NCBI RefSeq assembly: GCF_964204645.1
Contig: NC_134030.1
Location: forward strand, 5,374,778-5,438,777
Source of the DNA: Tubulanus polymorphus
Lineage: Eukaryota; Animalia; Nemertea
Length of the DNA stretch: 64,000 bases
Direction: 5' to 3'
Notes under the pieces: generated by a model
What the model saw: the letters and a program-made list of their open reading frames with translations, nothing else
What the model was told of the DNA's origin: nothing
The model's database searches: none
Position numbers and translations under genes: made by a program
Part shown: piece by piece, positions 11,701 through 46,435 of the stretch
How positions within the stretch are numbered: the stretch's first letter is position 1
How the letters are laid out: every line of letters starts with the position of its first letter

Positions 11701-13732
11701 AACTAATTCGACCCCGCGCAATCAATTGCTTCTCCGTACAACGCAAACGTTTGTACATTTGTAAAATCCACTTTCGTCCGATTCTTGCAGCAAGGGAGGG
11801 GGAATATCGAGAAGATTTATTCCCGTTATCTTCGGATTGATCGATCTAAGGGCTATAGTTAGGATTTAGAGGGTGCTTCATCAAGTTTGATTTACGGTCG
11901 TCGCCCGACACGCAAACGAAAGTTAGCACTGCGGGCGGCCGATGCGCTGTTCAACCGGATGGCAATATTTCACCAGCTTCATCAACTGTGTGTCACTTTG
12001 CTTGATTTTCCTGATTTGGAAGGGATTTCTCTGGAGGGATCGTGAGATGGGAACGGTTTATAGCGGTCATATATCAGGGGATGAGATGACTGGCGTCCGG
12101 TAAGGGGAGGAGGTCGCTTCGTCTGAAACTGTCAATTACGAAAACAGTTGGAAAGAATCGTTTCTTTTTTAAGTGGGACGCAAAAATACAGAAATCAGTC
12201 TTAAAACCGCTCGTAAAATTCGATGCTTCCTATCAGGTACGAAGTCCTATAATCATTAATGGTTTTATTCGTTTTCCATCTTTAACAAGTCCGAATACCG
12301 CAATAATTGAAGTGTCGTCGAAATGTTTAGAAGCGAGCGATGAAAAAAAGATCCGCTTTGAAATTTTTTGCAACAGCACAACTGACACATATACTCGATA
12401 GATAGTCTTCAGTTGTATGGAAACAGTTTGACCTGATTTTCGAAAATGTGACCTTGAAAATGTTGCCGTCACCGTAAAACAAATTATAGCGACAGACACA
12501 GCCACCATGTGTGATTAAATGTATGATGATCCCATTTTGAAAATGAGCAGAAAAAACTTTCGAGAATTATGAATTATTGACTGAGATTTATTGATATTGG
12601 AAAGGCTCATCGCTTCTTTTTTTCGTGCGATAAATATTGACTGTAAATATATGACTAGCCTGTACATTTTGAAAATGAAACGGACAAAAAGAGAAACTTA
12701 ATGTAATCTGCTAATTGTATGGACTGTAAGAGTTATAAATGTGGTTTATTCATGAATACAGGAAGTGCTCATTGTTTTTACCAATGGAATAAATATTTGC
12801 TGTACGTGCGGTTTTCTGAAGAGGAAGCCCCTATACAATAATCATTTAAATGATACTGGCTAGCCGCGAAATGATGCGACAGATGTTTTATGACTAAAAA
12901 CGCTGAAATTCTTCAATGAACATTTAGATTTTTAAGTCACCGAAAAAGAAAATATTTTTCATCTGACCTCGGGTCAAAGTATTTTCGGGCGCTATTAGTA
13001 CGATATCCCGTTGTGCGCGCGATACGGTACCGTTTGCATATCCTCGAAAAATGGGAAAATATTGCCAGTCAGCGCTGTTTAATGGGCAAATTGACTAATT
13101 TTATGACTGCAATAAAGTCTGCCGAAAATATCGGCAGTTCACGTGTTCACTTTGATGTGTGCCATCGACTGACAATTGCCTTTGTATTTTGGCGTAATTA
13201 AGCTTTCTAAAAAGGCCATTGGTAGGTTTAGGCGAGGTCACGTAAAAATCTCAATCGTTCCATTTCAATTCTAAAAAGAAATAAAAGAAAAAATTGAAGA
13301 CAGCGCGGCAATTCACGCTCATCTGAGATTCTTTATTTCTCCATTCAATAAAAATCGTTATCGTATTGGACATTAGTTGACGGTATTTTGTTTAAAAAAA
13401 AATCTAATCATCACGGGAATGAGCAGTCGAAAGCTTCTTTATCGAGATTATAAATTATAATGCGCAAGTAGGATTAATTATGGAGACGATGGATTATGTA
13501 TGAACGCGTTGCTCAGAAATAGAGAAAAAAGCCACGATTGTGTCGGCGACTGGCGTTCTATAACGGTTTGTGTTGTGAAACAAATAATTTGCCCGATAAA
13601 ATCTAATCAACGTATGACGCATTAACTCGTCGAAAACTTCGAATCGAATCCGCAAAACGCGGATGATGTCAGAAAAATCCCAGTTCGTCGGCTGCTTTTT
13701 CGATTTCCACCGACGAACGAAATGTCGGCCGC

Positions 13733-13808: not shown

Positions 13809-15849
13809 ACCGATATTTTATTTCTCTTCGTTCGTAAAAACCGGGAAAACTTATCCGAGAAGCTGGCGATGTTTGCGCCGCGCGATGGCTATATGTTCGT
13901 ATTATTGGCTCGGGTGCGGTTTATTTCGAAATGAAACTGTCGTCGCATATCACACTGAGCTAAGCTATACTCGGAGAATACCTCAAAACGATGGCAGTTT
14001 TATTGCGCCTTAATTTATCGCTTCATGCGCAGCCATTTTCCGCAGTTACATGGCCTTTTATGGCAACCGATGCTTGATAATACACAATAAATAAGTAACG
14101 TATTATAGCTTTACATGTACAGCTGTTGTTTATTAGAGAACGGTTTTCTATGTGGGATATTATAATTATGTGCTGGTGCGTCCCTGACGAAGCATTGACA
14201 GCAGTTTGATCGGACAAAGGTCTTCAACTGATCGACCAATCACACTCGGTAAATGCAACGATCAATTCGACGATAAATACATTATCGACTGACTATCACG
14301 GGCAATGTCAATTCTGATCGGTTTATTATATCTGTCTAAAGGTGGTAAATCGAAATTCTTACATTATGTTTATTTTCGTCGAAACTGTAAAACCAAGCGC
14401 ATAATCGAAAAATAGTCGCTTTAGGTTTTGAGAATTGTAACGATTGTCGTCATTATGATGGACTGGGTTCGGTTCGAAACTATAGGAAAAAACCCGTTCT
14501 TTCTTACGTGATTGATAGCAGATTGAAAGCGTTTCAATGTATACATTTCGAATTATTTTTTTCGTCAGAATCCTCAAAAAGCGAATTCAGATTTTATAGT
14601 TTTAATAGGTGTTAGAATTATTGAACCCTTCTTCTAGGATTTGATAATATGATTTTAATGTCGCCTACGTGTGATAATGTTCTGTAAGCGAAAAAACTGC
14701 CGATTTTTACTTGCATTCGATATCATTGGTGGCGCTGGTGTGTATACGATGGCCTACAAGTTATCGGGTGCTAAATCATAATTCTTCCTTAATGGACATT
14801 CTAGAATACATTAGTATGCTTTTGTACATATACCCTGGAGCAATTAGTAGTATCACGAGACAGGGAAAATGTGCTTTAAAAAATGTATGTATACCAACTA
14901 CTTTTTGTCACAGAATAGATGCAGGTCATTCGGGACCGCGTGTCTTTTGAGTTTAAAGTTTTCATTTGATAGCGGCCTAATTAATCAAATATAACTCTGA
15001 AGATGATATAGACGTAATGATATAGATTATATCTGAAAATAGAAAGGCTGTATTCATTGGGTCAGTATGTCTTATTACGGAACGACCATTAGTTTTTCAT
15101 CTAATTGCAAACGAACATAATCACGAATGCACCTGGACAGATAATGGACATTTCTTTTAATGTTCCTCTGGACACGTAATTACCCGTAATGTTTTATGTT
15201 ATCGTCGTTCGACGACGAGACCACGCGGCCTTTCGCGATTTTTTTCTTCTTTCTGCAGGTCCGAGGACGGACGCTTCACATCAGTCACTTTGACAGACAT
15301 TTTTGCAAGTCTTGATGTTTCTAATTGCGCAAAGGCAGGTGCTAAACTGTGTCGCCTTATCATTTTTTTCTCACAGTGGGTTCTAGTACGTAGCCAGTGG
15401 AAGGAGTGCAGGTTGCTTTAAGAGACTTGGGAAAATGTCAGCCTTTGAAAAGTGGACTGGGTTTACAACGTCCGATAAAAAATGCGCTCGTAATTAGTTC
15501 AAACTATGTTTTTACAGTATCGTGAAATCTTTCGAAATCTTTCGTAGACAGGCATACTGCAGTCAGACTGATATTCATCTCAGATCTATACAGTTATCAA
15601 GTAAAACCTACAGTTGATATAATAAACTTCCTTGGTAACAACTACATTTCTAGATTACTGTAAATCGTCATTTCTATCATTTTGGTTTCTCTGATGCTGT
15701 TAGAAAATAAACTTTTTATATCAGCTCTGTGTGCTTTTACTTGTTAGGCACAAATCAGCCGGTATAATGTGTCAGCGAAGTTGTAACATTTCTATGTTTA
15801 CGAGTTTGAAATGGTTGATTCGTCGTCGAGGGCTCGACAGTCGCTCATC

Positions 15850-17556: not shown

Positions 17557-18158
17557 ATAACTGGTGGCACGGAGTCCTCATTGTATCATCGTGGAACGTT
17601 CTGATCACCATTCGAAACAAGGGCGTCATAGATTATAGAATGGTGAAGGTTCAAATTTGACATGTATTTGGGCTTTCGGGCCATTAGCGCTGCATATCAT
17701 GAATAAGATTGCTGAATTTTCAAATAACCATAACATGACCGACGAAATGAAAGTCAGGTCACTTGTGAATAAGTTAACACGATCGTCAACCTTTTCATTA
17801 TACATTAAACCATTTAACCCGGGGATTTTCGAGCGGATTAGCGTCTTAGCTGTACTCGGTGTTAGGTTCGGGTCAATTAGTACCCGGTGAAGGCAGGTTG
17901 CGTATTTTTCCCATTTCATCTTCAGAGATTACGTGATGAGAAACGGTTTTTTCGTTGATCGATTGATTATAACCGGGCCATTAATACTAGCAGCGGGCTT
18001 TATGGGCGATATTAATCGCGATTAGATCACCTTCATGTGTGGATAAGAAAATCTCGTTTCCTCACCACCTGCCATCAGCCAAAGAACACATCACTATTAC
18101 TGTGATACACGGCCATATCGATAAAAATAATGTTCCATCGACATCTGTATTACGTCGA

Positions 18159-18188: not shown

Positions 18189-19376
18189 ACCTTGACTCGT
18201 GTCTCGCGCCGCAGCGATACGGCATTTTTGTCGTAACCAAGCCGCGCGATGATGTCAGCGTTTCGACGAATACACTATTACACCGGTTTCGGTCGGCCCA
18301 GTAGACGTAATTGATGAAATTAAAAATTCCGGACGACGAATTACTTAAAAACACCCGAGGGATTCTGAATAGCTATTAGTAGTTGCGGATGGAAACTGGA
18401 CTTCATCGGGCGATATGCTATTAGAATAGCTCGGCAAAGGGTTAACTGGCAATAACTTTCTTGCGGCATTCCTCCGATGCGGACCACAAAATATGCAATT
18501 TACGAGCAATCAAATTGTCTTAGAACCCAATAAATAATGTGCATCATAGCGTCTGTGATGCGGTTATACTGATCCCAATGCAGAATGTAATTATATTGAC
18601 AAAAACGTACGCTGTCTGTCTGGTGTGGGACTAGCTCTCCACATGCGAATAGAAATGAATCCCACACCGCCCTCCCTTTAGGCCTACTTCTATTACGTTT
18701 TTATGTCGGCAACCCTCTGAATCTTGTGAGGCCCTCGAATAATAACAACAAAGATACGATATTTTTTACGGGAGGCAATGCGGATCGGCCGGACAAAAAC
18801 CTGAACACATGTTTAATGTGGAAATCCCATTACTTTTCTTATATTTATTTACACCGTCAGTTTTATCCGCGCCTCAGCGCGGATTATTATTCATTTTACT
18901 TGGCGAACAATTAATTAGCCGGCGTGAGCTATATAGTATATAGAACCTATATACTAGAGGGTTTTGATAAATAGCTAATGCATTGCACATCGGTCGGATG
19001 TGTTAGTATTGAGCTGCTTAAGGCGGCAACATCAAAGCGTCGGAGCCATTCGGCGGTATGTTTTCTGAATATTGGGTCATTAACAATAATATCTTCTAAA
19101 CGACCATTAGTCTGTTCAATATTCGAGCTCCGACCGTTTGTTGTGATGGCCGAACTGTATCGCTTTATAAGGACACCACAACAGTAGTTATAGCCGCGTA
19201 GTCGGTAGGAGTATATAATCGAATGGATGGTAATGTCGAGTGTAGGGCATAAAGAAATCGTATCAAACCCGGGTGAATGAATCGCGAGTTCTTTGTCAAT
19301 TTAATGGCCGTTAAAATGGGACGCCACATGCGCGTTGAGTGCCGTAATATTCGCGATGAATACGAAAAACGCTTCG

Positions 19377-19685: not shown

Positions 19686-20292
19686 ATGAGTACATACAGT
19701 TTTACGAATCCGTACAATATCGGGGCCACGCCGGGAAATCACATTGACCAATATTTGCCGAACAATGCTCTAAGCGCAAGCTACGCCCATCAGACGCGGG
19801 ACTACGGCCACTACGACACCGGAGGAGTGGGGTTCGACACCGCCAACTGCGTAACGTCTCGATACCAGCATCAACAGTACGATAGATTGGACCAGCACCA
19901 CCAGCATCTACGAACCGTAGTGAATAATGGTGCTCACCATCACGGTCACGGTCAGGGAGCCGGTGCCTCGCCTACAGATCATTTCTGCGGCCTGTCGGAC
20001 AGTAGTGGGAATAACCCGGTGGTTAATTACTCGAGATTGAATGGCGGCGGTGAATTCTCGTCTTCCCGAACGAGTGATTACACGAACAGTTGCGGTACGG
20101 GCGGTGGATCTGTGCAGGATTTTTCGTGCGGCAATCGGGCGGGAACGGTCACCGGCGATTCGGCCGGCGATTTTCGGATTTCGTCGCATTCACCGACCTC
20201 GACGACTGCCGCGAGTCAGCATAACTCAACAAATGGCTCACCGGCTCAGCTACCTCCACACGGCCTGTACCCGTGGATGAAAAGTTTACACG
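19686..20292 (+). CDS. Antp: Antennapedia-class Hox gene, coding exon 1 (N-terminus to hexapeptide)
   Basis: ATG at 19686 opens MSTYSFTNPY (compare Drosophila Antp MTSYFTNSY). A His/Gly/Ser-rich region follows, then LYPWMKSLH and a phase-1 donor G|GTAAGT at 20292/20293. Confidence 0.9.
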
Positions 20293-25040
<4,748 letters not shown>

Positions 25041-26730
25041 AACGGAAACGTTCTAGAGTAGAACTTTTCATGAAAGGTCGATACGTAGAATTTTGAATAT
25101 ATACTAAAAACATTGAATGAAAATTTAGACCATAACCCACATTTTTGAATTGGATTCTAAGAAAGTGGAATTTACTATTGAACTCAAATGCGGTATGATA
25201 ATGTAAGTATTTTCGATTTTTGTTCGTAAAGGAAACTAGGTCATATTCATTTCAAAAATGACTTAGGGATTCAATTTTTCGTTAGTTGATATGAATAATC
25301 ATGGAAAGAAATATTCTACCGGCCGATAACAGATCTCACGCGTGCAAGAATGTTGTATAGTTATTCCGTAATAATATATATTCATTGCACGACTTGTACA
25401 GCTCAATAAATAGTATAAAACGGAACACTAATATGAATATCTATATGAATGATCTATCAGTGAATCGAATAATTATTCTTAAGACTTTCCACTCAAAAAC
25501 GCGAATATCTTTTCAACTACTCGATGAAAAAATAAGCCTATGGAATATTCATTTAACCGATGATTATATCTCAAAATGAATGTATGGGATGATTAATTTT
25601 TTCATAAAGATAGTAATTAAGGTCATATCGTTGTACTGGGGAAAGCGCAATCTCTAGACAGCGTACGATTGTATTATCTTTAAATCGGTCGTTGGAATAC
25701 ATTGAGTCTACGAGAAATAATCGGAAACTGGATAAATATTTCCATTTTTTCAAAACTTTCGAAAAACTTGAAAATCTCAAACTTTCAATACATTTTCAAT
25801 GTATCCGACGTACGGTATTATGATCCAACGATTCCCAAATATCAACGAATCGTCTAAAAAGATATCGTAGAAATCAATCGAATTGATGAACATTATTATT
25901 CTACACATTCGTTCTGGGTGCATTTCTTAATGTAAATATATATATATAGAATTTACATTAGTTGATCTTTTTCTTGCAAAATACGGTTTATGGTGAAATA
26001 ATAATCAAGCTCACAGTCGGGGTACAAGGAAAAAAGAGTTGTGTATATTATTTTATTGAACTTTTAATTTATTACTTATTTTCATTTTATTACCACGTGT
26101 CGTTGCATATACATGTATATAAATAGTAAACGTGCACGAATGTAAAAAGTGAAACACGACGATGTGGCTTGTGTATTTATAGAATTCAGTCTGACCAACA
26201 TGACCGTCTCATTTTTAAATGTAAAAGATAACTAGTAATATATGTGAGTTAGACTTAGAGAATGATTATTGTATTGTTCCAAGGAAACTATTTTGTCTGT
26301 GACGTTGATATAGATACTCGATCCGTGTAGAATTTTATGCTAATCATTTCAAACTATAGGTAGGTCGATTATTATTTCCTTAGTATTTATTCTATGTAGG
26401 GCGGAGCCTTCTTTTTTATTCATGAATTTACAAAGGTCTTTTGTTAGGCTCGAAGCCGTCGGTGTTTTATGTCTTTTAGTTTCGGGCTTTTCCGCTAGTC
26501 GGCGGTAGCTTTGAAAGCCCCGGTTCGCTATAATACGAGTGGGAGATTTTTGCAGGGTAAATGAATAACACTATTTCTCTCTTATTTCACGGTGGCGTGT
26601 ATAACGTGTTATTATGTGAATACCACCGCATTAGAATATACATTATATAGACATATATGAATATATTTTGTAGAATATGCATTCGTAATTAGTCTCAACG
26701 TGAAATAAAAAATGTATACATGTCATGTGA
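25041..26730 (+). other. Probable Antp 3' UTR ending near AATAAA 26704-26709 (a proximal AATAAA is at 25405-25410)
   Basis: AT-rich with many TGTA motifs and Pumilio-type TGTAHATA at 25931 and 26114. The end is inferred from the poly(A) signal. Confidence 0.5.
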
Positions 26731-27915
26731 CTCAACTATTGGTCAATTCAATGTCTCCCGTCTGCTCAGTTGCTATGGAAACCAATCGGGGAATGTCACG
26801 TCAGTTTTGTCATGTTTGCAAAGACGTCTCAAACACAATGAGGGACCGTGAGTTCATACTTTTTATGATAACACAATTTTCAACACGTGAATCGGCCTAG
26901 ATAATGTATGTTGATTTTTATGACTTCTCTTTGACTTGTTTATGGCCGTTGCATTGAATAGGTACATATACTAAATGCAAGAGCGAATAATGCATGTGTC
27001 TAGGGTTGATCTACACCGCGTACCAAAAGGTACCCTGTTCGGCTTAGGTTTTTGTCCCTTTTGACATGTTTACGAGGTACTGTGTACATAATTCTACCAG
27101 CTGGTATATACCGCGTGCATCGGGGTTCCATTGTCTGTTTAGGCAAGGCTTCACCAAGCGATGCATTGAAAAAAAGAGGGTTAGTTGCATTTCACCGGAA
27201 AAATCAGACGGAGGTATTATGCTTACTTGCGCCGGTACGCGAGTTGATCTTTCGACTTCGTCCGTGGCGTTCTCGTGTTGTTAGCCAGCCGGTTTTCCAT
27301 TGGATTCGCGATTTATTTGATTACGCGTACGTATACATTAAATTATTCATAGCATCAATGCGACTAGGCTTAAACGACATTTGAGACGAAAAATATCTGC
27401 GTCGCTTTATGCGATAAGAATTGATGGTATCGGCGTTAACCTTGGGAAGGCAAATTGACATTCAGAACAGCTAATACGACTATATTTATGTATTCCTCGG
27501 TTTGCCGTGTTATCCCTCGCGTTCGAATTCGGAATCCCAGATCACGCGGCGTAATTCAAAAATGGAAAGTTCACCGGATCCGGAGAGAGTATCGCCGGTG
27601 ATTAATGCTCCCGTCATTCGCTCCGAGAATTGCGATTGCAAGTGGAACCGCGACGGAGGTCAGGGTCATCGGACGTGAGGTCATCGCGGACACCAGTTAT
27701 CCGTGGCGTGATAAATCGCGTTCGTGATTGAGCCGACATTTCCCGATCATTTCTGGACCCTCGACGAATGACATGATTACTTCTAGCGGTCTGTATAAGT
27801 AATCAGTGGTAGTGTATGAAATATTCGCCCCCGGATCAACAATACAGACACCATGGCGATGACCGATAAACAGATATCGAATAGATGCGGGTTGATTCGT
27901 ATGAGGAAATGGCGG

Positions 27916-27992
27916 GTTTCTACGTACCCTGTAGAACCGAGCTTGTGTTAAAAATAATAATTCACAAGCCATTCTACAGTGTACATTGAAAC
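27916..27992 (+). ncRNA. mir-10: miR-10-family microRNA precursor; predicted 5p mature UACCCUGUAGAACCGAGCUUGU (27925-27946)
   Basis: The 5p arm has the miR-10 seed ACCCUGU and differs from canonical miR-10 (UACCCUGUAGAUCCGAAUUUGU) at 3 non-seed positions. Fold-back pairs: GTTTC/GAAAC basal stem, GTAC/GTAC, CTGTAGAA/TTCTACAG and GCTTGTG/CACAAGC, with an AT-rich loop and UGUG at the apical junction. It is on the same strand as the Hox genes. The paralogue identity was not determined. Confidence 0.9.
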
Positions 27993-29785
27993 ATTTGCTA
28001 CTTACACCATCATGGCGCACAGATTCTGGTCGTAGGACTGCTGGACAGAAAATAAGAGCTATGAACTGGCAATTAATATTTTTCCGTTATACCCTTGACC
28101 AAATAACGAACATTTCCTTTCACTTAGAAAAATGTTTATTTCAGATCACGAACACGCTTAATAGAAATATATGCAGGTTTTACAGCATAAATCAGCCAAA
28201 ATGTGGAAGCGGTCTCATTACGTATTCGCATACGTGGCGAACCAGTCAGCCACGTATGCTGTCTGGCTGCCTACACACAACATCATACAAAAATACCTTT
28301 TCATACAAAATTCATGATTCTGGTTACTACACGTAGAGAAATCAAGAATTCAGTTTCCCCTACCACACACGTCTTTAAAGACCTTTGTTTAGAATTTGCC
28401 CCGTTTGAGGCCACAATGGCGTCTTTGTGATGATCAATAGAGCCGTCGCGATAGATGTCAAGGCGTTTTGAATGTTAATGCAATGGAAGCCTTCTCATGA
28501 ATTATTGACGAGTAGGAGGTGCTTGTCTTTCTCGAATATCGCACACACTGCATTCGCAACACTCTTCCATCCTAAAACAAGTATAAATTCGTATATGAAA
28601 ATATGCTTTTTGTCACAAGGTTACGTTAATTAATATCTGCCTTTAATGGCCAAAAACTGGAGAGTTCGTGGAGAGTTTGGAAATGAGGATTCGTCAACAG
28701 CCAGTGGTTAACGTTTGTAAGAAGTAAGAGAGCAACAAAAGCCCAAACGAAAACAACCAACTACGTATACCTTTTAGACAATATAATAAGCGTATAGCTG
28801 TGGTTTGAGAATGCGAGCAAATCATTTCATTTTGTCAAATTGTGTTGTTTTCAAAACAGATACTCTAATCACATTCGAAAAGGTGCTCTCTATTTCCCGG
28901 TGTAGCGCAACTAAAGTATAAACCCATGCACAAGAATCTATTCCGAGAGCTTAAGATACCAAGCTGAAGCAAGACGACGTATGCATGTACAAACAATAAG
29001 ACATAGGCGCCTATAGATAATCGACACTGATTTCTCCACATCGCGAATTTAAAAATGGGTCACAATCGTTTTCATGGGGCACAAACTTACGCGTTGAATG
29101 TAGGCGAATCCTTGATTTATTATATTTATTGAGGCTAGGCATTTTTATTGCGAGCGGTGGCCTTTGATGTTTGTTCACCCTATCAGTCTGCGGTTAAACA
29201 ACAAACGATTCATCTGTCCACTGGTTCTGATACACGCCGACCGAACCCTACATACACAAGTATTTTTTTCGTCGACAAATCGGTTGAAAATATAAAGTAA
29301 CTGCACCGGGAAACCTCGGACGCTTCTTTCAAGGGTCGCAGTACGACGTCCAAGGCCGGTGGAGCTTATTTTTAGCTTCCGTCGTTCCCAGAATGCCCTC
29401 GTTGATTACCGTGAACCGATATTGTTTCGAGAATCAAACGCTAATTTACCGAGAAATCTACAGAGCAAAGCGACACGGCGTTCATCATTGTGTTCAAACA
29501 AAATTAATCATTTCATTAATATTGTTGAGTGCGGCGCCCTCCAAGTACAACGTTTACCGTTTATTTTCACGCTCGGCGTCTTTGATGCTCAAGAAAATCC
29601 ATAAACAATTTTTTGATTTTCAAGTGCAAAAGAAATACACATTTTGCAAAAATGGACGAAATGTTGAACCCCACGATTTACCTGATTATCATAACCTATT
29701 GATAAAACACTCGGTGTTGTAACGAGTATGCGAAATCCCACAATAGTCATCTTTGTGAATCCTCGACGAGGGTCAGAGAATAAGT

Positions 29786-29890
29786 GTCGGTTTTATAGGC
29801 TAGTATCAACTTTGAGCCAGGGGTTAACTCATTTGAAAATGAATTGAGTTAGCCCCAAGGTTAAAGATAAGTCTATAAAACCGGCCCCTG
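29786..29890. mobile_element. Palindromic MITE-like element
   Basis: Nested inverted arms CGGTTTTATAGG/TCTATAAAACCG and GGGGTTAACTCA/TGAGTTAGCCCC; ends in GGCCCCTG like the other elements. Confidence 0.75.
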
Positions 29891-32800
29891 TAGGTGAATG
29901 AAGTCGAAACGCCGAGATTTACCAGCTTAGGGGAACACTTCGAACAATTTATTATCGTATTCATATTATGAAATATATATACCCAGTGTTTTCCTTGACT
30001 TATTCCCTACGGATCAATTTGGATTATAACGTACGCCTATAGATATTGTGGTGTGGTGATCGAAGTGAAATAGTTTGAGGGTATTTATTAAATTCCATTT
30101 TTCATATTATATATTGAGGTCACCCCACACACTGTCCGCAGATTCGCTGATTCTAATATAGATCTGAAATAAATTTGATTGTTTTGTACATGTATTCTTT
30201 AAATACACAAACCTCTTCTTGACATTCAGATTCAGTTTATTCTTTACACATTTAACACGAATCAACAGGACATATGCTTTCCCACAGTCCTATTCAAATC
30301 GATAGTCACTGGGCTAATTTTAGCTCACTTCGTTTTACGACCTTTATAAAAATATACACGCAACCAATGCGAAGAGACGACATCTATTGTTAAACGCCTG
30401 AAACAGTTGAACCGGGAACAATTTCACACAGATCTACATGTACATTATTTGTAAAAATATTCAATTCCAATATCATACTCTTATGAATCCATTCCATACA
30501 AGTGCCAAATCAAAAATGTGCAATGAAAATATTAGCGTGAGTGTGATTTAAATTATTGTATGAAATAGCTGCTAACTAATTTGTGATGAAACAGAAAATA
30601 AGATCAAAATCAAACCAAAGCTTGTCGAAAGATATTCCGGATTAAAGAAGCCTGCAACCTCGAAGAAGATTACAGATTTTAACAAACGTTTGAACAACAG
30701 GGTTAAACACATTCTTTTTCGAACAATACGTAATTGGTATCAAAATATTATTTTCATTTGCTTTTCATGGCCGAAACATGAATTATACATACGAGCTAAT
30801 ATCGCAAACCCCAAAACAGCTATTTCCTACTGTACGACATTGCGACATCGTCCACCAACGCGTAATAAGTGCCATCGCCATGATTTAAAACCACGGAGCA
30901 CAATAAACGTCCATAATTTTCAATCGTACTTTAATGATGGACAAACAGCCGCCGGCGTTTTTACCGCGCAATAATTATGTCATATTTTGACAGATTCCCC
31001 TCAAACGAGCATGATCTATGTATTTTAATCGTATGGCGTTGTTTTGTTGACCGATTTGACTACGGCTGTTGACACCACTTATGAGACCTCGTCATTCACT
31101 GATAATAATTTACTAGATTCCTAGCCATTAATTCAAGTTTGCATATTATTGGTTAATTATCGCCGGGCAAATGACAGTTTTAATAGCTCACGACACGTTT
31201 TCGTTTTATGTAATATAGAACTCGATGATAAATTCTCTCTCGCATTCATCATCGGTCGAGATTTAATGGCTATTAATTTATTTAATAAGTTCTCCTAATG
31301 CGACAAGGGGTTAAGTGGTGAATCGTTGTAATGGTTATCAAAATTTTATTATGAAATAAATTATCAAACGTCACTTTAGTACATAGGATACGCGTAGCAC
31401 TTTCCCTACACACGCGCGCGCGCAGAATACATTTCTGTTTGCCGAATCGTTGCGATTTTTGGTTTCTAACAGAACTATAAGCATTTACTTTGATTTCAAG
31501 TACGTGCAAGATATTGATTCGAAAAGTAAGCAAAATACAATTTGAAATTGGATGGCAAATATCTTGCGAAGAATATAACGTAATATCGTAGAGTTAAGTT
31601 CTTTAGAAGTTGTTAAGAAATCATACACTTTCAGAAAAAGTTAATTTTCAAAGAAAATAGACTTATCTATTTTTGAGAGTGATGAAAATAAATTATGATG
31701 CGCAAACTGGGTAAAAGAGAAATATGTATATATTACACACAAGTATTCTTGTGTAAGGTGTCAAGGTGAAGTATATGGTTTATACTTTCTAATAACTTAC
31801 TAACACAAACGTAGACTACGTTTTCCATTAAAAAGTTAGACATTGATGCATGATTTAGTGGTAACATATTTTACTTTCATAAGTTGTTAGCACAGGCTTA
31901 AAGCGTCGTTCACGCGCTGAGAGGGCGCTAGCTGCAACCGTGTACATAATGCAAGCCGGCGGCAAGAACAAAAGCTGTCATACAGGTCATAAATTGCTGC
32001 AGTCAAAGACGACGAATAAATCACCATCCATCATTGAAATGGCCGCCTCAACCTCTCATACTATAATTTATCCCCGTAATATAAGCGCCAGCACATGAAA
32101 ATATTTACTAGCAGCCCTCATAATTCTTCGTTTGTCATTAGCTCGGCTTGCCGGCTTTGTTAACCACGTAGAATGTCTTGTATTTTGGAAAGTTTTATGG
32201 AACACTGCGAACGCAATAAATTTGCGATGTTCAATGAGTTTGAATCGAGCTTGAATTGAAGGTGAAATATACGGCGGTCGGTTTTGTTTTATGGCCCTGT
32301 AATCCCGACGCCCAGAGCTTGGCAGATTTTTGATTTACAATTGCGCGGTTTTTGTTTCGCCATCGCCGGATATAGAAACGAGTGAACAGATTTCATCCAC
32401 GATGTTTTAACCTTTTGACCAGTTTAATCTATTTTTGACACCGAAAGCAGAAGTCCAAATCAAATCTTTAATATGTGAAAGCAACTTTACGATCTACGAA
32501 ATAATTTCATAGCTTTTGTAGTTATATGAAAGAATAAGCTGTCAGCGAATTCTGAAAGTCTTCAAATCCTCTTCAAGAGCCATTACTACACATTTCCTGC
32601 AACCAAAAAGGGTAATGAGTCTGAAGAGCCGGTGAAATATTTCATAGATAATATGTTTGATCGCTAGTTTTGAAATGAACATACTAGATTGGTAAAAACC
32701 GAGATAATGGCGGTGAAAACTCAGTCAGCAAAGAAGAGAAAAATATTCATCCCACGTTTTTGCTGCCAGTCTCCCGGAGAAATACAGAATTTAACCTCTA

Positions 32801-34739
32801 TGACGCCACTGGTTCTGATAAGGCAAGATTTATGGACGAATTGTGTCGCTATAGTTAATTACTTTCGTGATGGTGGTCGCCCTAAAAAGCCTGTCTAAAA
32901 GTTTAGAAATGTCAAGAAATATTTCGCAATAATTTATTCGATTCGGAATACGATCTATTTGCGTAATGTTATCAAATTTGAAGGCATTCATTATACGCGG
33001 TTGTAATAAGTAATTTAGATTATTTTCTAAACGGATAACTTCGATATGGCGTTTCAAATACATAGATCACGCGAAGAAGTTTTTTATTGCTAAAATGACT
33101 TCATTATTAGAATAAATGTGAAAGATACATATACAAACACGAAACAAATAGCCACAGCCGCTACCAGCTCATAATAAACCAATCATAAACACGCACGGAT
33201 ATTTATGTATCGCCATTCTTATGAGAACACTTCGAATTTATGCGTGGGAAGAATTCTGATAATTCAAATGTCAAACTACTCAGTCGTGGACGAAGAAAAA
33301 TCGCGAATATGTGCTTTACAAAATGACACATATGTGCGAATAAGCACCACCCCTATCAGACAGCTGTGCTAGGTTCACCTCAGAACCGTCTCTTATCGCC
33401 TTTGAAATACGTGTTTTCTGCACAAAAATTAAATAAACAAAATTCACAACACTGAGCGCGAATATTCCAAATGCGGTTTACGAAAACGCATGGCACTCTG
33501 CACCGCCATCGTGACATCGATATGTAATGCGAAATAACCTCTAGAACATATTAATTACCATGTAATTGAAGCGGCAGGTGGAATTTATGTAATGTGGCCG
33601 TCTATGATAAATAATAATGGATTCGCATCACGAAACAGTCGTAGACAGTCACAAAAATCTGTTGAATATTACAAATACGCCGCTTTTGAAACATATTCTT
33701 CACGTTTTTGTAACTTAATCGCTATCATTTAATGCAGAAGAGGTTTTTTCTTCTAAAGCGATTTATCTCAAATTCAGAGGGGGCGTTTCTTACCGGAACA
33801 TTTCATAATATCGATAATAACTTTAGTGATTAAAATTTATCCCTTTTCAGTTCGTTTTATCATCGAAGGCGCGCGCGCGTAGCAAAAATGTCAAGATTCA
33901 TTATCGGCGGGAAAAATAGTTTTCAAAATGTTTGCAAATTGTTTTGTGACTTTGGCGTGCGTTTTGACCATCGGTGACCGTAATAACAAGAGCAACGCAC
34001 GAACCTGTACATATTAGAGCTCATTGCTGCCATATACACGGGTCAAACAGAAGTTATTAGATTCTTATGCGTCTAAATATATAGACCTAACACGCATTCT
34101 TTTTCTTTCGGCATTCGCTCGACTGAAGTTCATCGTTCCTATTTTATTGCCGGGTGTGTTAAAATGTCAATCATTCTAAACTCAGATTTTACTAGGTTTT
34201 TTCCCAAATAAATCATGATTCCGTCTACGAACGACTGAAAGGTGATACGCAAAGTGACAAGGAGGAATCGGAACGCTTATCGGTGTATGTCGCGGCAAAA
34301 AAAAAAAACTTATCAGAAAAAGTTTTCCGCTGAGTGTTATTATTCCATAAGCGGCGCTTATTGCGAATAAACTCACTTATTGCGTGCGGAGTGACCTTCC
34401 AAGAGCTCGGCTCGATTATCGGTCTTTGTTTGGATGACAAAACGGTGGTCAGTTATGATTAAGTTAAGCGATTACCGCGCGGACGCTGGCGCAAAAAGAA
34501 TATTGCATTACCTCCGCAGAAGATGAATCATTTCTGCGCGAGTTTGTTGCAACATTTAGTTTCTTATGTATCCGCTAAGTTAGTTAATTCGCCCGAGAGA
34601 TAGCTATGGCAACCGGGAGCGCAGAAAGCTGATTGCATTGCAAATGTAATCAAACGAATAGGCATAAATGCGAATCCATTCATTGTACAAAGTAGCGAGT
34701 CGAGATCCCTTTTATCGCGGGCTCGCCGACGAGCTGCGC

Positions 34740-34765
34740 TGATTGGCTACACGTCCCACGTGACC
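34740..34765 (+). promoter_or_regulatory. Lox5 proximal promoter: inverted CCAAT (NF-Y) plus CACGTG E-box (USF-type)
   Basis: GATTGGCTACACGTCCCACGTGACC, about 90 nt upstream of the ATG, with 10 nt between ATTGG and CACGTG. Confidence 0.7.
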
Positions 34766-34851
34766 TGTCACTCTCGCATATTATCTCGTTGAACGAGGCC
34801 ATTCTGTAACGATTGTAGCGCTAATCATAGTCGTGTTTATAGAGCCGAATT

Positions 34852-35365
34852 ATGTCTTCTTACTATGGCAATGTCTTATCGGCTCCGATGCCCAACGGAA
34901 GTCCGGTGGAAACTTTTCAAATGCCGGACATCAAGTACGATACAAACTATAACCACCAAAACGGCGGCAGTCCGGACCACTTGGACATGCAAGCACCCGT
35001 GGCTGGCGGAATTTACCCGAGGTTTCCACCTTATGACAGGTTGGAAATTCGGCCGATAAACAACTCGAATCACCAGCGCAGTTACGGCTATAACGGAAAT
35101 GTTTACAGTAACATCGGTGGTGGAGGGACTAATTGCGGTAGCGCCAGCCCGCCCGAGGCTCGCCAGTACCCGCAATACAGCGAAAACATGGACTCTCGTT
35201 TCGCGAACGGACAATACTTGAACGCTGCCCAACAGGCTATGAATTCTCATTCCGCGTATGGTACTTGCAGCCCGACCTATGGCACGAATGCGATGACCGG
35301 AGGACTGCCCGGTGGCCAGAACAACTGCGTCATCTACCCGTGGATGAAAGCTACCCTTAACGGAG
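34852..35365 (+). CDS. Lox5: Lox5 Hox gene, coding exon 1
   Basis: MSSYY N-terminal motif, YPRFPPYDRLEI motif, VIYPWMK hexapeptide, and a phase-1 donor G|GTAAGT at 35365/35366. Confidence 0.92.
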
Positions 35366-43559
<8,194 letters not shown>

Positions 43560-46435
43560 TGTATCACATGACTCTCTAAACCAATGAGATTAGTCTTTGT
43601 GCGGGTGCCATTTGGCGCAAAACGAACATTGCAGAGAGGAACAATGATCTCCCGGTCATAGGAGAGCGGGGCATAGGAGAGTGGGCATAGCCTGCCATAC
43701 AACCAACCGCGCGGTGCCCCCACATAGCGGACAGCTGTTTGCGTTTGACGAAGGTGTCTCCAACTTTCATGTGTATAGCTCATTTTTCGTTCGTTACTTT
43801 TTTGTTTTGGCCCGAAATGTTGTTCGTCTTCTTACATTTAGTTTGAATTTCATTTCGTGTAAAATGATCTGAAATGTTTCATGAATATGTGTACTCTCAG
43901 GACGTGGACAATGATATCTTACTGAACTCGGTGCAGGCGTTCTTCACTGAAGAATCTTTCAAATATTATACTATTTTAAACATATCAGCCTATTCCTCCG
44001 TTTTTTCTTTCTAAATTCGAGTGTTACCTCGAGTTTAACCATTATCATGTGGCAAACACTATACAGAACGGCCTGTACCACCGATATCTTATTCTCGTTA
44101 TTTAATCGTGTGTTAAATTTATTGGTTACTCAACACGCCTGGAAACTTCACTTCTCCATTCAAGTTGCTTAAACACGTAGCTCCGAGTATACTGAGAAAC
44201 TCGTGGTAATAATTCGTTTTAGAATCGTTATCACGAGTGACGGGCGTCCCTGGGTTCGTGGGTGGAATCGTTTTTATTTCGAAGTAATCTCCCTGTAACG
44301 CTATCTCACCAAACTGGCAGCCATTTAACTCTGATAGATAATTTCTGTTTAGTATTATATACAGCAGGGTGAGTGTCCCTACCGAAGAATCAATACAAGA
44401 TACATTTAAAAAGAAAAATGTGCTGGATAATAGTTTCGGATCTATTTTCCTTTGGATTTGTGGGACTTCTATCTTTTATCATCATTACAATACGGACAGA
44501 GTGTTTCAAAGGTTACTAAAAATGAACTTCTCCGTTTTAGCTTTTCTTCCTGTCCGAAAATTATTTATTAGGTTTGCTATAGGAAAACTTACGTATGACA
44601 AGGGTAACATTTTGCAGCGCATTATGTGTATTCTTCGATGAATTTTATTTATTCAGTTCCATTAATGATTGCTAGTTTTTGTTGTATGAAAATGTAATTT
44701 ACGAGTGATGCCTACTTTTTGGGCAAATCGGTTTATGAAGGGTAATAAAGAAAGATTTTCACGAAACCAGCCTGTGACCTGATAATCCAAATGTCGTACG
44801 AGTACTCTAGTTTTCGGTAAGGCCATTAGTTTCGTAGGTAAACAGTCCTTCAAACTTAATTCAACGTAACTATTTCAATTATCAGTCGAATGAGGTCTGC
44901 TTTTCGTGTGTGTATGAGTGCAAAATAACTAAGATCTACGTCCTTTTGTCGCTTTGTGTCATTTTACGTAGGGTCAGAATGCATTAAGGATATAGCAATG
45001 TCTGCGTCTCTGCAGCGCGTCAGTTGTACACATCATTGCCATCGATTCTGTTCATTCCTTAGCAGATATTCTACCTCAAACCACATCTCACTGCTCAAAA
45101 CTGAAGAGACTCAGGTGTGTTCGAACGTAAATCGCGCATAAAACTGAACCAGATAGTCGAACGATGATAGACTGTCTCCGGGCGATCCGACCTTACGCAA
45201 ACACCAGTGCCGTAATCTACGATACCAAAACATTGCATAATACATTTTCGATACTAAAACTGATGTTCAAACAAAATGCAGCATTTTAAACTAAAGAATC
45301 TCATTCAAATGTCTAAGACGGACTAAAACGGTCTTTAAATTTCAAATCGTATATGTTTTGATTTTGTGTGTTACAGTGCGGAAATCCTAGAATACACTGA
45401 GAACCCCTAGTTATACTTAATTACACCAGGCAGCTGCGGGTATGATGTACTCAAGAGCATGTGGCAGTGACAAAATTAAAATATGGCAAGGTAATCCCCG
45501 AGAGGACCAATTAAGTTCGCCTCGAGATACATTAATACGTCATTTGTCTTAGGATTGAATTATAGCGGATGCGAAAAAAGTATACGCCCGAGGGCTGGGA
45601 TTACCAGGTGAACATTGCCGGGGAATAGTGAATATATTTCAAAATGATTGGGAACTATGAGGCAATAAATTTTGTTGGAACTGAGGTGTGCGTTCAATTG
45701 TATTCTGATTCGATCTAAATCGTCATTATTAAATTCTCGATCCAGAGGCGAAATCGTGTATTTCTATTTTCGTTTCCCTTCGCATTGTTGACCCTGTACA
45801 CCTCAAGCGTTTTCTTAGATAAACCTCCATTCAAATTTGATATTTGGCGTGATGGCTTTCAGGATGACGACATACTAATCTTAATATAAGTGGCTTTGGT
45901 GTTTTTTCTTCCTTTTTATATCTGAGTTACGAGTGAATTGGAAATATTCTTTTGTTTTTCTTTTTCAATAATAACATAACGAGAAAATAAGTCACCGAGT
46001 GTTATTTAAAATGAGGACGCGATTATTTATCATATTTTATTATATTCCAAAAGTATGTTTTAAGAAACAAAAAGATGTTTTGTGCAAAGTAAGATTCGAA
46101 AAAGGAACACTGCGCATAGTTTCTTTTTTACATAAATGTGCATGTATCTAATATATATCTAATGTACGTACAATGATCGAGTGAGCTATGCTACTACAGT
46201 AGTTTGTAAATAGAAATGGGGAAATCCAGTTTTGTACATGTATTAATAATGTGTATAAAGATACTGTATTGAAAACTATGTACGTATTAAGTAAAAACAT
46301 TGTACACTTTGTCCATACTGTGTTTGTAAAGGGTAGAAAAAAATGTTTAATGTCAAAAAAGCAAAAGATGAAAAAAATCTCTGAATGATATGGCAATAAT
46401 TTTTGTCTAAATAAAAATCTATTTCTTGTGAATTT
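43560..46435 (+). other. Probable Lox5 3' UTR ending near AATAAA 46410-46415
   Basis: Dense TGTA cluster at about 46130-46330 including TGTAAATA at 46205, then AATAAA followed by GT-rich sequence. Confidence 0.5.

Follow-up and report, generated by a model that had tools for sequence, protein, structure and literature searches.

The Hox cluster of the palaeonemertean Tubulanus polymorphus is intact over the 264 kb (NC_134030.1:5314840-5578640) examined around the window, by which we mean the whole 64,000-nt stretch of DNA that was analysed. Post2, Lox2, Lox4, Antp, Lox5, Scr, Dfd and Hox3 all lie on one strand of this interval. The first coding exon of the Hox7-like Antp gene is identical (100%) to the N-terminal 202 aa of a 294-aa T. 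polymorphus protein, and searches with this exon returned nothing but Tubulanus Antp itself. The two-exon Antp model has the same length (202+1+91 codons, 294 aa). Repeats across positions 24950-35000 of the window are at chance level. The 264-kb cluster also holds five miR-10-type hairpins, which are Mir-10-P7, an inverted twin of P7, P5, P1 and P4 (Table 1).

Table 1. Features of the Antp-Lox5 interval and related loci (window positions unless another numbering is given)
Feature	Position	Strand	Basis or remark
P7 twin, same mature arm	NC_134030.1:5357940-5358030, window about -16767	-	between Lox2 and Lox4
P5 (variant hairpin)	window -11802	+	between Lox2 and Lox4; matches P5
Antp (Hox7-like) coding exon 1	19686..20292	+	YPWM motif at end, phase-1 donor
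Antp coding exon 2 (homeobox) and stop	24763..25040	+	homeodomain type, cluster order Lox4-Antp-Lox5
Proximal AATAAA	25405..25410	+	hexamer only; candidate signal
5' extension of site, non-conserved	26535..26552	+	pairing with miRNA nt 8-22 private to Tubulanus
Conserved core CAGGGTAAA	26553..26561	+	7mer-A1 for P1/P7; 8mer for P5 (-1 register); 8mer for P6 (-2 register)
Distal AATAAA, probable Antp mRNA end	26704..26709	+	by position matches ATTAAA of contigs A and B
RFX X-box (26769-26782) with CCAAT and CRE-like motifs, candidate promoter/enhancer	26769..26803		motif scan
Mir-10-P7 hairpin with lower stem	27910..27999	+	fold, homology
Predicted mature 5p arm, seed ACCCUGU	27925..27946	+	5' end predicted from homology
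Predicted 3p arm, seed AAGCCAU	27965..27985	+	star in Platynereis; possibly active on anterior Hox genes in Tubulanus
Lox5, next Hox gene, two coding exons	34852..43559	+	6.9 kb past P7 hairpin
Canonical miR-10	between Scr and Dfd
miR-993	between Dfd and Hox3	-
Contig A	site 14015-14023, X-box 13298-13311, hairpin from 13283	-	locus numbering
Contig B	site 18414-18422, X-box 17847-17860, hairpin from 17832	-	locus numbering

The hairpin downstream of Antp is the known paralogue Mir-10-P7 (MirGeneDB nomenclature), here in a new phylum, with its processing predicted by homology. It lies on the Hox strand between P5 and P1 and folds with -32.4 kcal/mol (z -5.2), a value that none of 200 shuffles equalled. 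As in other miRNAs, the arms are paired and the mature sequence is conserved around a variable loop; the automatic consensus fold of P7 hairpins is weak, owing to gaps in the arms. The Rfam mir-10 model (RF00104) matches the hairpin with an E-value of 3.6e-6 and 33 bits, below the gathering score of 47.5, which reflects the model, because the canonical P1 of the same genome also falls below this threshold. The Tubulanus 5p arm shares 21 of 22 nt with Pdu-Mir-10-P7, and differs from P1 at three positions and from P5 at two internal ones. In Platynereis, Pdu-Mir-10-P7_5p is listed with 1871 mature and 2 star reads, a position between P5 and P1 and Annelida as its node of origin, and P1 exceeds it about 150-fold (288,965 vs 1,871 reads; PMC11213123 suppl. 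4). In Capitella, P7 occupies the same place in the order, and the Lottia and Lingula rows are without P7 (PMC11213123). Tubulanus P7 is therefore like that of Platynereis dumerilii and Capitella teleta (PMC11213123, PMC12257675) in its P1 seed, Hox strand and P5-P1 placement. It is unlike them in its nemertean host, in nt 1 (U for C, the sole change to the Platynereis arm), in its 3p arm and in having a second, inverted copy between Lox2 and Lox4. The occurrence of Mir-10-P7 outside Annelida goes against the node in the Platynereis table and bears on the miRNA-based phylogeny of nemerteans.

P7 and its twin share two letter-identical blocks of 36 and 49 nt, covering the arms, the lower stem and the 3' flank past the stem, with loop and flanks otherwise unrelated. 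Either gene conversion or very strong selection on the two arms may explain this identity, and an assembly duplication was rejected on account of the differing loop and flanks. Mir-10-P6 (miR-1991) was not found in the 264-kb cluster or by a pattern search of the Tubulanus genome, and may have been lost or have diverged. The exact P7 21-mer had no match in the JGI metagenomes. A shorter P7 pattern retrieved from the metagenomes three Mir-10-P5-type hairpins and five sequences that are not hairpins; the contigs with the three P5-type hairpins are evidently animal host DNA.

An earlier note on this DNA had proposed that the miRNA downstream of Antp represses Antp itself through an extended site in the Antp 3' UTR, and the arrangement it described holds. 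The site spans 26535-26559 and lies between the AATAAA hexamers at 25405 and 26704, and the hairpin is about 1.2 kb past the distal hexamer on the same strand, with the mature arm starting 1221 nt after it. CAGGGTA at 26553-26559 is a 7mer-A1 match as claimed, provided that the mature miRNA starts at U27925, and is lost if it starts at A27926. Pairing runs contiguously from nt 1 through nt 12 with the two G:U pairs of the original description, at nt 8 and 10. The further claim that ACGAGT pairs with the 3' end of the miRNA, including bases that differ from canonical miR-10, is correct as to the pairing (nt 17-22, two G:U, including the divergent nt 17-18) but not as to paralogue specificity. 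Canonical miR-10 pairs at nt 17-18 too, with one Watson-Crick and one G:U pair in swapped order, and reaches -21.7 vs -23.3 kcal/mol for P7 (22-mer from U27925), so the 3' pairing gives almost no paralogue specificity; P5 reaches -19.9 kcal/mol. In addition, conserved Watson-Crick pairing to miRNA nt 13-16, as in a 3'-supplementary site, was not found, as nt 15-16 are unpaired and nt 13-14 pair only past a 4-nt bulge, with none in the two annelid-like contigs described below. Paralogue-specific 3' pairing was rejected because it is private to Tubulanus, skips nt 15-16 and leaves P1 and P5 binding nearly as well.

A seed match of this kind is not rare, given that 6.0% of dinucleotide-shuffled UTRs contain a 7mer-or-better seed; a seed together with a duplex energy of -23.3 kcal/mol or below occurs in 1 of 3000. 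Shuffled miRNAs reach the score of the Antp site in 0.1% of cases and, with the seed held fixed, 2.8% of shuffled 3' parts pair as well as that of P7. Apart from the miRNA hairpins themselves, the Antp site is the best 7mer-or-better site on either strand of the 264 kb. The site remains above chance, though the tests are post hoc with eight Hox UTRs to choose from. Its nine-base core, CAGGGTAAA, occurs three times on the plus strand of the 264 kb, with two of the three copies behind Hox stops (Antp and Hox3). An origin of the Antp site by repeat or duplication was rejected, as it is single copy. Predicted accessibility of the site is average or low, at percentiles of 0.55 in Tubulanus and 0.26 and 0.31 in contigs A and B.

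These contigs, A (ERZ25767047) and B (ERZ26222911), were found in ENA by Lox5 exon 1, and Antp was reached upstream; three further Lox5 contigs are too short upstream to include Antp. Among named matches, the Lox5 of the contigs is closest to that of the annelid Paralvinella (41% vs 34% to a brachiopod). A and B are related, and the comparison is one of two independent lineages. The Antp-Lox5 interval of both contigs also contains P7, its arm beginning with C, and the order of features is the same in Tubulanus, A and B: Antp stop, CAGGGTAAA, poly(A) signal, RFX X-box and P7 hairpin. Counted from the Antp stop (Tubulanus/A/B), the site lies at +1513/+1727/+1455, the poly(A) signal at +1664/+1756/+1486, the X-box at +1729/+2439/+2017 and the P7 mature arm at +2885/+2467/+2045, and the gap from the hairpin to Lox5 is 6.9, 28.7 and 24.3 kb. 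The hairpin as a 5' element of Lox5 was rejected, since its distance to that gene varies fourfold.

CAGGGTAAA is the only sense 9-mer common to all three regions. An antisense control also gave one 9-mer common to the three, so the argument rests on the sense 9-mer being a predefined seed match in matching order. By chance, CAGGGTAAA appears in 0.4-0.5% of shuffled Tubulanus regions and in 1.3-1.9% of those of A or B. Between A and B, the site and the ATTAAA that follows it by 20-22 nt form a 52-nt block (88%, E 2e-13) that is the strongest in 2-2.5 kb, and this block and that of the X-box are the only strong alignments. The extended site described in the earlier note is thus kept in part across spiralian Antp 3' regions: the seed site is present in A and B, where it is an 8mer for P1 and P7, and the extended pairing is not (-15.4 and -16.8 kcal/mol). 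Upstream of the core, the annelid-like sites have the final TTTG of the 5' extension in common with Tubulanus. Conservation is confined to the seed complement and ends at the third A, which is the footprint of the three registers in Platynereis, where P1 and P7 start N-ACCCUG, P5 starts one base earlier and P6 two (PMC11213123 suppl. 4). A cut of P5 one base further 5' is also reported elsewhere (PMC12257675). The third A may be AU context, because P6 was not found in Tubulanus.

Our analysis leads us to propose, with about even confidence, that the long Antp 3' UTR contains, at its end, a conserved seed site for the whole Hox-embedded miR-10 family. Argonaute carrying P1, P7 or the P7 twin (seed ACCCUGU, 7mer-A1) would bind the same nine bases as Argonaute carrying the seed-shifted P5 (seed UACCCUG, 8mer), and this binding would modestly dampen Antp. 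Much of the input would come from paralogues posterior to Antp (P5 and the twin) and from the abundant P1, with the neighbouring P7 as one contributor among several. P7 itself might be made from RNA of the Antp termination zone, from the X-box element or from both, and a polyadenylation switch would be unnecessary. From the sequence we infer inclusion of the site in the mRNA, Argonaute binding, repression and the relative input of the paralogues. Hox miRNAs usually act from the posterior side, in keeping with posterior prevalence (PMC3394115), and both P5 and the P7 twin are posterior to Antp. In Drosophila, deeply conserved miR-10 sites in Hox genes have only subtle effects (PMC3290615). A family-wide site is the most economical reading of the predicted pairing with P1, P5 and P7. 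The interpretation of the earlier note is partly supported, in that its observation is confirmed, the miRNA is real by homology and Antp has a conserved miR-10 seed site.

We found no paper on this Antp site in the literature searched. The miRNA itself was already known, as was the old principle that Hox miRNAs tune Hox genes; what is new is a site for the miR-10 family at the Antp 3' end, kept between nemertean and annelid-like worms, readable in several registers and forming a cassette with P7. A close comparison is iab-4, also encoded in a Hox cluster, whose conserved target site in a Hox 3' UTR is surrounded by sequence of low conservation. Unlike that case, the present one involves a spiralian Antp target, a miRNA of miR-10 type and conservation across two phyla, with one site that fits up to three registers and one miRNA gene directly 3' of its target. 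The literature searched does not identify targets of the extra spiralian Hox miR-10 paralogues, for which the Antp site provides one precise candidate across two phyla. Convergence on one site at different strength also offers an idea of why seed-shifted paralogues are kept.

The X-box module begins 60 nt past the distal AATAAA and contains the only strict X-box and the only CRE+CCAAT pair in the 264 kb. Genome-wide, the X-box motif has 629 matches vs 12 for controls, an excess of about 50-fold, and no X-box was found within 3 kb of the other four miR-10 paralogues. In A and B, too, an X-box follows the poly(A) signal and precedes the hairpin, at 14 nt from the mature-proximal stem region. The module may be a promoter or enhancer of P7, and an RFX site would point to ciliated or neuronal cells as the place of expression. 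At the same time, the hairpin lies 0.56-1.2 kb past the Antp poly(A) signal and 2.0-2.9 kb past the Antp stop in the three species, and this short, fixed distance behind the signal is compatible with read-through. Sense miRNAs less than 4 kb downstream of a gene are a likely read-through class in which host-targeting loops are known (PMC6609535). P7 is likewise sense and less than 4 kb downstream of a putative host with a site, as are miR-21/VMP1, miR-26b/CTDSP2 and miR-338/AATK (PMC6609535), but it differs from them in its candidate separate promoter and in a seed common to three to four other loci of the same cluster.

A rival reading, which we consider unlikely, derives P7 from Pol II read-through transcripts that continue beyond the Antp poly(A) signal. 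P7 would then be produced in all cells that transcribe Antp and would be the chief repressor acting through the site, in same-locus negative feedback or incoherent feed-forward. Its distance to Antp is stable while the gap to Lox5 varies, it falls in the class with known host-targeting loops, and P7 forms the best duplex in Tubulanus. Against this, the extended pairing is missing in A and B, the site can be used by P1, P5 and the twin, a conserved X-box intervenes between poly(A) signal and hairpin, and in flies pri-mir-10 is transcribed from a start site of its own (PMC3290615). The X-box and at least three other miR-10 paralogues thus provide simpler routes than a read-through loop. Only a small sliver of the probability of this rival goes to the addition made in the earlier note, namely escape of Antp mRNA through a short UTR. 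That proposal is unsupported, as there is 1 AATAAA between stop and site vs 2.6 expected, and the proximal signal has a weak downstream GU/U element and no conserved counterpart in A and B. In Drosophila, alternative polyadenylation is reported to control the visibility of Hox mRNAs to miRNAs (Thomsen 2010 and Patraquim 2011, cited in PMC3394115). The Tubulanus site is alike in lying between two AATAAA hexamers, and unlike in that its proximal hexamer is at chance frequency and lacks a conserved counterpart.

It is improbable, in our view, that the 9-mer is kept for another reason, as a DNA site, an element for an RNA-binding protein or upstream context of the poly(A) signal, with the miR-10 match incidental. 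The core in A and B overlaps the TALE/Meis motif TGACAG within a block that runs into UG-rich sequence and ATTAAA, and Hox 3' regions are dense in enhancers. Tubulanus, however, is without TGACAG and the UG-rich part and yet has the exact seed-complementary bases on the sense strand, and there is an excess of miR-10 seed sites downstream of Hox3 (3 vs an expected 0.4 for four genes) and downstream of Antp in B (P 0.02-0.03). More doubtful still is a Tubulanus site that is fortuitous or not part of the mRNA and that resembles the annelid-like site by convergence. The frequency of 7mer-or-better seeds in shuffled UTRs would allow this, the nemertean and annelid-like UTRs cannot be aligned beyond words of 13-14 nt, and the UTR end at the distal AATAAA is only predicted. 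The same 9-mer in the same order at similar distances in three species argues otherwise, as does the rarity of a seed with such a duplex energy. A weak hint in the same direction comes from a sequencing run, which may not be RNA, that contains 0.39 of the words of 24765-28200 vs 0.19 for a transcript with the proximal end.

A further reading is an ancient nemertean-annelid cassette of Antp, terminal site, poly(A) signal, X-box and P7, in which P7 from the termination zone would feed back on Antp, P5 (and P6 where present) would read the same nine bases and the inputs would be summed. We regard this reading as rather unlikely. If it is true, the shared P7 would also count as a rare genomic character that unites Nemertea with Annelida.

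The other arm of the hairpin may have different targets. The 3p seed AAGCCAU has 8 sites, four of them 8mers, in the 2.5 kb downstream of Lox5, Scr, Dfd and Hox3, vs 0.98 (0.18 for 8mers) expected, and it has none downstream of Post2, Lox2, Lox4 and Antp. This enrichment was not reached in any of 1000 shuffles, with 12 register-group tests; A, B and Platynereis do not share the 3p seed. The strongest signal of the P7 hairpin in Tubulanus may therefore be repression of anterior Hox genes by the 3p arm rather than feedback on Antp by the 5p arm.

Further matches to miR-10 occur elsewhere in the cluster. Downstream of Lox5, canonical miR-10 has an extended match with an imperfect seed at 44719-44750 (-19.3 kcal/mol), which abuts an AATAAA, and the sense strand of the Lox5 intron contains a miR-10 8mer and the 9-mer at 39297-39306 and 42310-42318. 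The 3' region of Scr has an extended site with a G:U pair in the seed at NC_134030.1:5463684-5463712 (-27.1 kcal/mol for P7 and -23.6 for P1), which is reminiscent of the conserved miR-10:Scr site of insects. In the 3' region of Hox3 (NC_134030.1:5565197 plus 863, 1200 and 1280), there are three miR-10 5p seed sites, among them one 8mer and the second copy of CAGGGTAAA behind a Hox stop.
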